Origin: Guillardia theta CCMP2712
Lineage: Eukaryota > Protista > Cryptophyta
NCBI RefSeq assembly: GCF_000315625.1
Contig: NW_005434635.1
Span: 248,001-312,000 of the forward strand
Length of the DNA stretch: 64,000 nucleotides
Direction of reading: 5' to 3'
The position numbers and the translations under genes were made by a program. The notes beneath the pieces are model-generated. The model was not told the DNA's origin, did not search any database, and worked only from the letters and a program-made list of their open reading frames with translations. Of the stretch, positions 19,700 to 26,680 are shown one piece after another (within the stretch, counting starts at the first letter, position 1; every line of letters begins with the position of its first letter).

Positions 19700-22600
19700 T
19701 CATCCCTGTGGATGCGACATGTCGTTGCTATCAACACGTGGGAGATCAGATCCTTTGGCATTCTTCGCTTCCATCCTCAACCTCGCACTCTCCTCTCTTG
19801 ATCGTTTCGAACTCATTCGCTTCTCCTTGGGGTCGAATCCCTTCCCAAGCATGTCAGAGCACAACCATCTACATCCTACCTCTTCTTGCCTGTTCTTCCG
19901 CTCCAAACACCGCCCATGGCGGAGTTGGCGCTATGTAAGACATCACATCGAGCTCCTTCGTTTCCAGCCATCTAAGCACACATCAACCTTGGACAGTCTC
20001 GTGCGAGCACGCTTCTTGTTTTCAGGATGGTCAGAGGTGAATACCTCCTCCATGCCGTGATGAACTTGTCGTAGTCGATGTGGGTGTGCCATTGCTGTCC
20101 TATCAGGTAACGACGCGATGCGATCAGGATGCAGCAAGAGTGCTCGTGCTCGCTAGCGATCTGTTGCAATCAACGTAAGAGGAGGAGGGGAAGAGGAGGA
20201 CGAGGGCAACAGAGATCAGTAAGAGCGGGGGGCGGAGGGGGCGATGTAGTAGGAGAGTGGGAGCCTCGGGCGTCAAGACTTACATCATATTCATCCTCCA
20301 CCGAAGGTTCGGCCCTGATCGCCTCGACAAGTTCCCTCGCAAACTGAACCACCTCTGAGTGGAGAGGAACGCTTTCCATGGTGATCTCCGATGCCTGGAG
20401 GGTAAGATGTCAGTCTGTTGTTAACTTGCAATCTGTTGAGGTGCGGGAGGGCTCGATCTGACGATAGAATGGGTGTGGGAGGAGACGTATGCAAGAGATG
20501 ATAGATAAAGGTGATCGCATGCTATGAGAATGAAGCTGAAAACAGAATTGCAACATCTCCATTCGTGCCACAACATGACAGGGGGAGTTGCAACGCATCG
20601 ACAAGCTTGGAGCAGCTGTCGGGCCTAGGAGGGGAGCGACTGCTCACCTTTGAGGTACCACAATAGGTGACGCCCTTGATCTCGATGAAGTGCGGCCTCC
20701 CAAGGGCGACCAGCTTCGCGTAGTTTGCAACGTCGTCAACATTCTTGTCCTTCACTAGGGTAAGACGGTAGACTGGAGGCGGTCAGGTTGAGGTGACGTC
20801 TGCTGACCAACTTCACCTGTCCTACAGTCTTTGTCCTTGAGAGCTCTTAGCGACTGAGCTAGCCGGCTCCAGCTGTCCTCGAACAGAGGCCTGAGAAAAT
20901 ATTTCAGAGGCTTGTCCTTGGTCAGAAGGACTTGTCGCAGACGCACATCACCTCATTACATCATGACAGCACTCCCAACTTCATCTACAAACATCATCTT
21001 CCAACATCTTCTACTGACATCATCTGCTAACGTCATCTTCTAACTCATCCGCTAACATCATCTACTGACATCATATCCTGACATCACATCCTGACATCAT
21101 ATCCTAATTCATCTGCTAATATGATCTAGTTATATCATATCACCTACTGGCATCATCTTTTAACATCATCTATCAACATCATCTTGTATTCTCTACCATC
21201 ATCTTCCACCATCATCCGGTTGTCACCTGTCAATCTTGGTGAGGGTCTCCGGGTTCGCGGCATCGATGGAGACGTAAAGCTGGAATGAAGATGTTACCAC
21301 ACACTTTCTTAATCCATCTATTGTCCTGCTCCTGCTCCTGCTCCTGCTCCTGCTCCTGCTCCTGCTCCTGCTCCTGCTCCTGCTCCTGCTCCTGCTCCTG
21401 GTCCGGCGCCGGCTCCAGCTCCAGCTCCGGCTCCTCCCTCCTTCACTATTAAAAAAAAAAGGGAAAAAAGAGGGAGGTTTATGTGTTTTTTTTTTGACGT
21501 TGAGGAGGGGGTNNNNNNNNNNNNNNNNNNNNNNNNNNNNNNNNNNNNNNNNNNNNNNNNNNNNNNNNNNNNNNNNNNNNNNNNNNNNNNNNNNNNNNNN
21601 NNNNNNNNNNNNTGAAGCGTCATCATCATCATCATCATCATCATCATCATCATCATCATCATCATCATCATCATCATCATCATCATCATCATCATCATCA
21701 TCATCATCATCATCATCATCATCATCATCATCATCATCATCATCATCATCATCATCATCATCATCATCATCATCATCATCGCCTCTAAGAATCGAAATCA
21801 TCATCATCGCCTCTAAGAATCGAACATCTCAAACCTGCGCGTTGGTGACCAGGTAGGTTGAGATCCCGTTGTGATGTAAGAGCGACACGAACCTTTCAGG
21901 CTCAGTCAGACGCCCTCTCCTGCTCCTGCTCCTGCTCCTGCTCCTGCTCCTGCTCCTGCTCCTGCTCCTGCTCCCTCTCCTCTTGCTACTCGTACACCTG
22001 CTCCTGCATTTCCTGCCCCTGCCTCCAGATCCATATTCTATTCTTCCAGCTTCTCCTTTACCGGTTGATCTTGGGGTACATGATGGGCTCGCCGACGAGG
22101 GACAGAGCGCAATGGCGAACAGCGAAGGCCTCAGCAAGGCGAGGAGCGAGAACACCAGGAACCCGCGAGACACTTCGAATGGAGTCCTAGATGTGGATAA
22201 GGGAGGGAGGCAGGGAGGGAGGGAGGGAGGGAGGGAGGGAGGGAGGAAGGGAGGGAGGGAGGAAGGGAGGAAGGGAGGGAGGTAAGTACAAAAGCAAGGA
22301 GGAGGTGAAGCAGGAGGAATATAGGAAGGAACAGGAGGAAGAGATGGCTTACGTAGTGTCCCTTGAAGCATCCTTCCAGGATGTCCTCCGGTTCGTTCAT
22401 GTCCCACATCCAAGAAGTACCAACCTGGTTGCCAGCAGGTCAGAAAGATGAGGGAAGAAGGGATGAAGGAGGGTGAGAATAGAATGAGGAGAGGAGAGGA
22501 GAGGAGAGGAGAGGAGAGGAGAGGAGAGGAGAGGAGAGGAGAGGAGAGGAGAGGAGAGGAGAGGAGAGGAGAGGAGAGGAGAGGAGAGGAGAGGAGAGGA

Positions 22601-25600: not shown

Positions 25601-26680
25601 TTCACCTGTCCTCTGGCCTCGTCTCCTCTGCTCCGCACGATGCTCTAGAAAACCAAGGAAAGGCGCAACTCCCGTCCCAAACCCGACCAGCATCATCGGC
25701 GTGCGGGGATCTTTCGGCAAATGAAAGTCATTGGACGGTCTCAGAAAGCATTCCAACGTGATCAGCTTTCCCTTCTCCTTCGCCACATGAGACAAGTCCT
25801 CGAGGTATCCCGAGCACAACCCTCGACGCCTCACAGGAGCGCTCCTGCCCTTCCGATGCAGCACATTTTCACACACAGAGACCAGGATCTTTCCTTTCCT
25901 GCTCCCGCGCGCTAGAGGAGAAGTTGAGAGGGAGTAATACCTCGGGGATTGCGGAGGAAGCATCTCAACTAGCTGCCGGAGGTCAGGGGTGCAAGACTTG
26001 AACATCTGGATCACTTCAACAACATCCAACCTGCAAGAAACAAAGTCCTGCACAAACTTCCTCTGAGATATTCCAGCCTCCATCAGCTCCGACTTGTCTG
26101 CCTCGTCGGCACACAGATCAGCAAGGGAGCGCAGCAGCTTCTTGGGAGGACACGTCAGGTCTCGTTCCCACATCAGCTGATTGGCAATCTTCGGATCCAG
26201 CAATCTCATCGTTCGCTCCCTCACGCTCTCGTCGTACGTCTCGGGGAATCTGAATTCAGCTCTTGACGCCCCCTTGCCCTCCTCCCTGATCAACTTCCTA
26301 GCGAGCAGGACGTCCAGCAGTTTGGCCATCAGGTCAGGAGGGTTGGGGCACACGATTCCGATACAGTCACCGGGCATGTACTCAAGAGGTTTTGAGAAGT
26401 CCAAACTGAACTCCAACACTCTCCTTGCAGGTTCGTCGTGTCCTGACTCGGAGATAGATTTCACCTCCTCCATGGTCGCGCTCGCGGTGCTCGCACTGGG
26501 CATGCGATCCGAGCCTCCTCTCAACCTTGGTTGTAGCCATCTCGCTCCCCTTGCCCGTCGGAAAAGTTGTCTCTTCCAACCGTAGTCGGGAGCTATTCGG
26601 AAGCTTGGCAGTACCTCGGTGGAAGGTGGAAGATGGAGATAGAAGGCTATAAAGGTGATGAGGAGACAGCGGTGGAGCAT
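19700..26680 (-). CDS. TYW1: TYW1 (tRNA 4-demethylwyosine synthase, radical SAM) fused to an N-terminal FAD/NADPH reductase module and two flavodoxin-like domains
   Basis: Exon 1 (26680-23235) is one ORF with [39 protein letters not shown], flavodoxin FFATRTGHAE/SSWDDGQP/GLGSSSY, then KQGYKVVGSHSGVKLC. Later exons give RWTKSMLRGRGGCYKHTFYGIESHRCMEATPSLACANKCVFCWKHHTNPVG (CX3CX2C), HCALSLVGEPIMYP, LVTNAQ, LYVSIDA, VYRLTLVK, FIEIKGVTYCG, EHEHSCC, WHTHIDYDKF and GFDP. One short expected exon probably lies in the N-gap. Confidence 0.93.
21513..21612. other. Assembly gap (100 N) inside TYW1
   Basis: Run of N. Confidence 0.99.
21620..21780. repeat. (ATC)n trinucleotide microsatellite in a TYW1 intron
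   Basis: Pure CAT/ATC tandem array. Confidence 0.97.
22486..22608. repeat. (GAGGA)n pentamer microsatellite in a TYW1 intron
   Basis: Tandem array; adjacent introns also hold (GGGA)n and (GGA/GAA)n purine tracts. Confidence 0.95.

Follow-up and report, generated by a model that had tools for sequence, protein, structure and literature searches.

Can a radical S-adenosylmethionine (SAM) enzyme carry its entire reducing system on the polypeptide that performs the chemistry? The question is raised by a gene on the reverse strand of a 64,000-nucleotide stretch of the Guillardia theta CCMP2712 genome (contig NW_005434635.1, positions 248,001–312,000; hereafter the window, with coordinates counted from its first letter). 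A preliminary description had read this locus as a reductase binding flavin adenine dinucleotide (FAD) and NADPH, similar to methionine synthase reductase (MTRR), joined in-frame to the flavodoxin and radical-SAM parts of the tRNA-Phe wyosine synthase TYW1. The MTRR-type FAD/NADPH module and the flavodoxin-TYW1 part are truly joined in-frame, and the fusion is transcribed and conserved. Its anatomy suggests a one-chain enzyme of the periplastid compartment, the relict cytoplasm of the endosymbiont.

Results

Reading frame, transcripts, and splicing

The frame at 26680–23129 (−) comprises 1183 codons without a stop, and contains the FNR-type module with all motifs quoted in the preliminary description. 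FAD_binding_1 (residues 84–292), NAD_binding_1 (331–390), and Flavodoxin_1 (738–871) each scored above the Pfam cut-off. The TYW1 exons were analyzed one by one or via the public record P0009, on which Wyosine_form (PF08608) reached 71 bits; these four domains had been anticipated. Matches to the frame among solved structures were diflavin reductases, whose flavin mononucleotide (FMN) and FAD parts aligned in swapped order. The makeup first given for the frame (FNR module, linker, flavodoxin, start of TYW1) stands with three amendments: the final 34 codons read through into an intron, as exon 1 ends at 23235; residues 1–56 form a leader with a signal-peptide-like stretch and LRGG; and residues ~903–1065 form a second, degenerate flavodoxin rather than linker.

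Two sequencing runs, X2 and X3, were taken as RNA because a 118-nt intron is missing from them. In both, exon 1 is spliced to TYW1 exon 2 (joint 23233/23114) with this GT-AG intron skipped, in agreement with the earlier view that spliced exons complete TYW1. The in-frame continuation past RYLQDVW was equally confirmed: RNA contig X2/14 covers 24726–26900 unbroken and unspliced, including the RYLQDVW codons, and one DNA contig crosses the same interval. Read depth was alike on both halves of the gene (7.3 versus 9.7; 233 versus 261). The 162 linker codons after RYLQDVW are free of stops in this frame (chance ~0.002), whereas the two other frames hold 3 and 10. RNA contigs start 220 nt or more 5' of the ATG (26680–26900, −), indicating a long 5' untranslated region.

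By addition of the exon lengths the precursor has ~1,528 residues. The downstream exons are identical to the public protein GUITHDRAFT_52860, a partial model of 359 residues without everything upstream of the TYW1 core, an omission that may be why the architecture went unnoticed. At exon 3 the public model takes an earlier GT, so that the third Cys of CxxxCxxC is lost. Predicted GC donors at 22655 and 19889 (−), giving two GC-AG introns in one gene, explain both this loss and the partial state of the model.

Downstream of the reductase/flavodoxin junction, at a distance of 3.3 kb, lies an assembly gap of undetermined bases (N). Both flanking exons have a phase-0 boundary on the gap side and follow TYW1 collinearly. 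Thirteen residues between NAQ and LYV, present in the canonical G. theta TYW1 paralog on C16 (described below) and in other TYW1 proteins, could not be read in the gap flanks; therefore, a 39-nt exon probably lies inside the gap.

Reductase module

The closest named matches of the FNR module were MTRR. In a quick tree it grouped with the protein P0023 (98) inside an 11-row set holding the named MTRRs, with a Shimodaira–Hasegawa-like approximate likelihood ratio (SH-aLRT) support of 96, which places the FAD module within the family named by the preliminary description. The predicted structure of the module (predicted local distance difference test score 82) had human MTRR (2qtl) as its top Foldseek match, the input alignment of this model containing MTRR and CPR rows. 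Catalytic residues are kept, namely R247/Y249/S250, the triad S250/C524/D569, W571, and C367-R368, as is the pair S433-R434.

Between the leader and the FAD domain no FMN domain was found by Pfam or in the frame, and the chain goes on for ~950 residues beyond the module. As its domain order departs from that of the family, the protein was not filed as an MTRR. An upstream FMN exon completing an MTRR was ruled out by the in-frame TGA immediately 5' of the ATG and by the same start in Hanusia. A separate, complete MTRR-like gene is also present in G. theta. Near the module in the tree stands P0012 from Aphanomyces stellatus, an MTRR with two tandem FMN domains.

Flavodoxins and TYW1 core

Flavodoxin 1 scored 80 bits on the TYW1 hidden Markov model (HMM) versus 49 on that of MTRR. 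It fell outside the MTRR FMN clade (99); a tree joining the two was kept by the approximately unbiased (AU) test (p 0.137), and tree tests on its origin rejected no grouping. Judged from the sequence, the fusion order is permuted versus diflavin reductases. The reversed order proposed earlier was thus upheld, and the descent from a permuted MTRR that was coupled to it was not; a single MTRR gene that was circularly permuted would be one conceivable source.

Flavodoxin 2 was Pfam-negative and reached 33 bits on the TYW1-flavodoxin HMM versus at most 5 on diflavin FMN HMMs. Its model, built from two sequences, had flavodoxins as top structural matches with middling Z values of 7–8, and trees put it among TYW1 flavodoxins. 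In the flavodoxin trees the row of the metagenome contig L061 (see below) was trimmed of a low-complexity insert.

The TYW1 core carries KLCR, GGCYKH, and HRCME across exons 1–3, which we take to be the three auxiliary-cluster Cys and the pyruvate-binding Lys of TYW1. The radical-SAM CxxxCxxC is present in exon 3 given the GC donor, and is contiguous in L061. TIGR03972 gave 239 bits on P0009, below its cut-off of 318; this model is prokaryotic, and P0009 is without two pieces. In a tree asking whether the core was duplicated in the host or derived from a red alga, both G. theta TYW1 copies grouped with L061 (SH-aLRT 90; partial rows, no labelled red-algal sequences).

Occurrence in other lineages

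In Hanusia phi a single protein of 1125 residues (P0001) shows 57% identity over 100% of the query and stops at the same first intron. A profile search yielded two further, metagenomic families; a metagenome scan with a two-sequence alignment gave no match. Contig L061 encodes on one strand a leader with SLRGG at its end, FNR exons, RYFQDVW running on into acidic sequence, an intact and then a degenerate flavodoxin, and TYW1 extending through CxxxCxxC to a GCFKGH signature common with the window. Loci L055–L060 hold the leader and FNR module with no FMN domain; one of these, L058, represents the front half of the fusion, its sequence running on past RYIQDVW. The architecture that had been expected elsewhere thus recurs in full order in Hanusia and L061, and in its front half in L058. 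The source of L055–L060 and L061 would be cryptophytes. A KH gene beside the metagenomic loci (L055–L063) matched G. theta weakly.

Among 280 diflavin relatives fetched, one had a flavodoxin after the FNR module (the Hanusia ortholog) and none a radical-SAM domain. No FNR module was seen upstream of the TYW1 core at the 39 other loci from a scan with this core, many of which have short flanks. The ESM Atlas returned ordinary diflavin clusters only, plus one sub-threshold flavodoxin lead. In the literature searched on TYW1 or wybutosine in cryptophytes, the nucleomorph, and LRGG leaders, with subscription papers mostly outside the search, no description of the architecture was found; in line with the earlier supposition, this variant of TYW1 is apparently undescribed.

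Leader and paralogs

In residues 1–56 a hydrophobic stretch is followed by a basic spacer and then RLRGG. Four lineages share this leader, with LRGG kept in Hanusia P0001, P0023, and L061. Residues at the likely cleavage sites, which were judged by eye, are non-aromatic, and M60 comes after the leader in G. theta and Hanusia. A second frame with signal peptide and LRGG lies upstream on the ortholog contig (L061:30–190, +).

The comparison of LRGG leaders covered the G. theta paralogs checked. A signal peptide with LRGG was found on the leader-bearing copies of Dre2 and Nbp35 and on a PheRS-family paralog (loci L072/L073 on C8, L098 on C39, and L103 on C19); none was found near Nar1 or Tah18 candidates in G. 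theta. Periplastid copies of Dre2 and Nbp35 have been localized with green fluorescent protein (PMC6105332), and the LRGG-leader loci found here are presumably the same ones. TYW4 (LCM + kelch; L113 = G000:C171 ~84516 downward, −) begins with a signal peptide and LKLRGG, and a further LCM-like gene on C129 has the same kind of leader. The single TYW3 locus (L014/L095 = G000:C34 ~454047–456100, +), which continues into a TYW2-type domain, has a signal-like N-terminus and a second Met, features that make dual targeting possible.

The canonical TYW1 paralog (L012:5782–7257, − = G000:C16 ~758800–762257) has a membrane-anchor N-terminus and one flavodoxin; one intron position is common to it and the window gene. 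A periplastid role is indicated jointly by the import leader, by the presence of a second flavodoxin, and by the existence of this paralog. All features of the gene are listed in Table 1.

Table 1. Domains and exons of the fusion gene in window coordinates
Feature	Position	Strand	Basis
Bipartite import leader (hydrophobic signal-peptide-like stretch, basic spacer, RLRGG)	26513..26680	-	hydropathy 2.87; LRGG at 26524-26513
MTRR-type FNR-like module (FAD, connecting, NADPH domains), aa 65-571, no N-terminal FMN domain	24968..26488	-	Pfam, tree, residues, model
RYLQDVW, usual diflavin reductase C-terminus, here without stop after it	24968..24988	-	RNA contig X2/14; read-through also in P0001, L061, L058
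Low-complexity linker, ~160 aa, conserved basic motif aa 684-714	24485..24967	-	
Flavodoxin 1, FMN-binding motifs TRTGHAE, SSWDDG, CGLGS intact	24011..24484	-	Pfam E 1e-24; alignment
Flavodoxin 2, degenerate TYW1-type (D.RV.K.LL insert), FMN-binding loops gone	23486..23974	-	HMMs, model, trees
Exon 1 (leader to KLCR; TYW1 core from ~23359)	23235..26680	-	RNA splice joint
Exon 2, auxiliary-cluster Cys and Schiff-base Lys (GGCYKH)	23045..23116	-	RNA splice joint
Exon 3, radical-SAM CxxxCxxC, GC donor required at 22655	22656..22728	-	ortholog L061 has full motif; junction predicted
Exon 4	22353..22424	-	match to P0009
Exon 5; intron after it (between IN[RK] and F) placed as in C16 paralog	22062..22186	-	
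Exon 6 (end TNAQ, phase 0)	21835..21892	-	
Assembly N gap within intron region; probably conceals 13-codon exon	21513..21612	.	inference from absent peptide
Exon 8 (start LYVSIDA, phase 0)	21227..21279	-	
Exon 9	20817..20890	-	
Exon 10, Wyosine_form start	20648..20772	-	Pfam
Exon 11	20284..20394	-	
Exon 12	20045..20160	-	
Exon 13, second GC donor, junction predicted	19890..19971	-	
Last exon (GFDP motif to stop)	19700..19840	-	

Two other candidate features were rejected: a likeness of the basic linker motif to the C16 paralog, as the resemblance gave no score, and a Pfam match to Tsi6, which fell below the cut-off. Neighboring frames were assigned by eye. At 17553–19269 (−) lies a gene resembling CobW/COG0523-type GTPases, which has an insert rich in His and a leader of plastid type; an RWP-RK-like transcription factor occupies 32622–33452 (+), and a SET-domain-like frame 39132–40133 (−).

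Discussion

The observed domain order, transcription, conservation, intact catalytic residues, leader type, and paralog, read together with what is known of the families, make it fairly likely that the gene encodes a one-chain periplastid TYW1 for nucleomorph tRNA-Phe with the electron path NADPH > FAD > FMN > [4Fe-4S]. The precursor of ~1,530 residues (leader, MTRR-derived FAD/NADPH module, linker, flavodoxin 1, flavodoxin 2, radical-SAM TYW1) would be imported into the periplastid and the leader then removed. A hydride from NAD(P)H would be passed to FAD, and single electrons from FAD to the FMN of flavodoxin 1. The tethered flavodoxin 1 would then reduce the SAM-binding [4Fe-4S] cluster for the TYW1 chemistry, in which m1G37 of nucleomorph tRNA-Phe would become imG-14. 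The long linker may let the flavodoxin shuttle, and flavodoxin 2, its flavin binding presumably lost, may act as a spacer or docking surface, while the canonical C16 paralog would serve the host cytosol. The periplastid has its own Fe-S assembly (PMC6105332). Translation in it uses nucleomorph tRNAs, and tRNA-Glu is the sole tRNA listed as missing from the nucleomorph by Gile et al. (PMC4494062).

Several points weigh against this proposal. No single RNA contig covers both halves of the gene, and the raw-read run X22 consists of 8 reads only; a record joining reductase to TYW1 is missing because the unitigs break at three microsatellites. In L061 the frame is broken once, in a G run ahead of TYW1. 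Among the residues that contact the 2'-phosphate of NADPH, S433 and R434 are kept and the Lys/Tyr pair is replaced by R481/H483; with GPGTG changed to GFGTG, the preference for NADPH may be relaxed. The signal peptide was called from hydropathy and by eye, and the location is a predicted one. Finally, the periplastid already has Tah18, so that it may not need a separate reductase of its own for TYW1.

The most serious competitor, which we consider unlikely, is a polyprotein or hitch-hiking arrangement, in which both halves are imported under one leader and are then either separated by cleavage within the linker or active independently, the reductase serving other periplastid partners such as a cobalamin-dependent methionine synthase or other radical-SAM enzymes. 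A long, poorly conserved linker, the MTRR descent of the reductase in the tree, and the weak turnover of yeast TYW1, which needs no reductase, would all suit such an arrangement. It is countered by the order kept in three lineages, by the lack of any LRGG-type site found in the linker, and by the module itself: as no FMN domain precedes it, flavodoxin 1 is its obvious acceptor. Alternatively, fusion and electron chain could be as proposed and the compartment different: the lumen of the endoplasmic reticulum, the stroma of the plastid, the mitochondrion, or the cytosol if a downstream Met, for example M60, were used as the start. We regard this as quite improbable. The cleavage site was judged by eye, M60 follows the leader in both G. 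theta and Hanusia, and an organellar TYW1 is known from trypanosome mitochondria (PMC4417183); yet the leader is kept in four lineages with non-aromatic residues at the likely cleavage sites, periplastid paralogs carry the same leader type, and the cytosol is already covered by the canonical paralog.

A redox-dead or vestigial FNR module, with flavodoxin 1 relying on an outside donor such as periplastid Tah18, appears very improbable. The long branch, insertions in the NADPH domain, and altered GxGxG and 2'-phosphate residues would fit decay, for which flavodoxin 2 offers a precedent in the same protein. However, G. theta and Hanusia do not differ in the FAD motif, the catalytic triad, or the shielding Trp; L061 and L058 retain RY.QDVW and VCGD; and the predicted fold is confident and complete. 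That the locus is an assembly chimera, or a pair of neighboring genes with no intervening stop, is scarcely credible and already largely refuted: although the whole is not spanned by any read or contig and the linker holds microsatellites, Hanusia has one continuous protein, L061 the same order, and the RYLQDVW codons are crossed by one DNA and one RNA contig.

Returning to the one-chain periplastid TYW1, we would give even chances to a wider claim, namely that cryptophytes evolved, for wybutosine in nucleomorph tRNA-Phe, a natural radical-SAM enzyme whose single polypeptide holds the full NAD(P)H > FAD > FMN > [4Fe-4S] chain, its domains arranged as in none of the other diflavin proteins fetched; such an enzyme would also point to MTRR-type reductases as in vivo donors for ordinary eukaryotic TYW1. 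As the physiological donors of radical-SAM enzymes are mostly unknown, the fusion names a candidate donor type for TYW1 and offers a single-chain system for measuring the whole activation path. Taken with TYW4, which also bears a leader, and possibly with TYW3/TYW2, the fusion leads one to expect that wybutosine is made in a relict endosymbiont cytoplasm.

Comparison with known systems

As in eukaryotic TYW1 (yeast ScTYW1, PMC8941971; Schizosaccharomyces japonicus flavodoxin domain, 6PUP/6PUQ), a flavodoxin precedes a radical-SAM/Wyosine_form core with CxxxCxxC, three auxiliary Cys, and the catalytic Lys; unlike these, the window protein begins with an import leader and has, in addition, the FAD/NADPH module and a degenerate extra flavodoxin. 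Yeast TYW1 carries FMN alone. No reductase serving it in vivo is known, and the Bandarian lab considers a flavodoxin-reductase-like protein possible as donor (PMC8941971, PMC9204691). The self-sufficiency predicted for the fusion is less unique than first claimed, because yeast TYW1 turns over with NAD(P)H alone, at a level at least 70-fold below that with dithionite (PMC8941971).

With MTRR and with CPR, NOS, BM3, and CysJ the protein shares an FNR-like module with connecting domain, RYYS, Ser/Cys/Asp triad, and RY..D.W, MTRR being the nearest diflavin relative of the module by sequence, tree, and fold. In contrast to the diflavin reductases, it is without an upstream FMN domain, its flavodoxin follows the module, and the partner is a radical-SAM rather than a haem or cobalamin enzyme. 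A reductase and a catalytic domain on one chain are also found in the natural P450 BM3 and NOS, which differ in their haem partners and in having FMN before FAD, and in the engineered viperin-CYB5R3 iCAREs (PMC13592299), which are artificial and without an FMN shuttle. The iCAREs were presented by their authors as the first self-sufficient radical-SAM enzymes (PMC13592299); the fusion would be a natural counterpart. The trypanosome mitochondrial TYW1S (PMC4417183) is likewise a TYW1 duplicate retargeted to a second translation compartment. Whereas TYW1S lost its flavodoxin, the window protein gained a reductase, and the compartment proposed for it is a relict eukaryotic cytoplasm.

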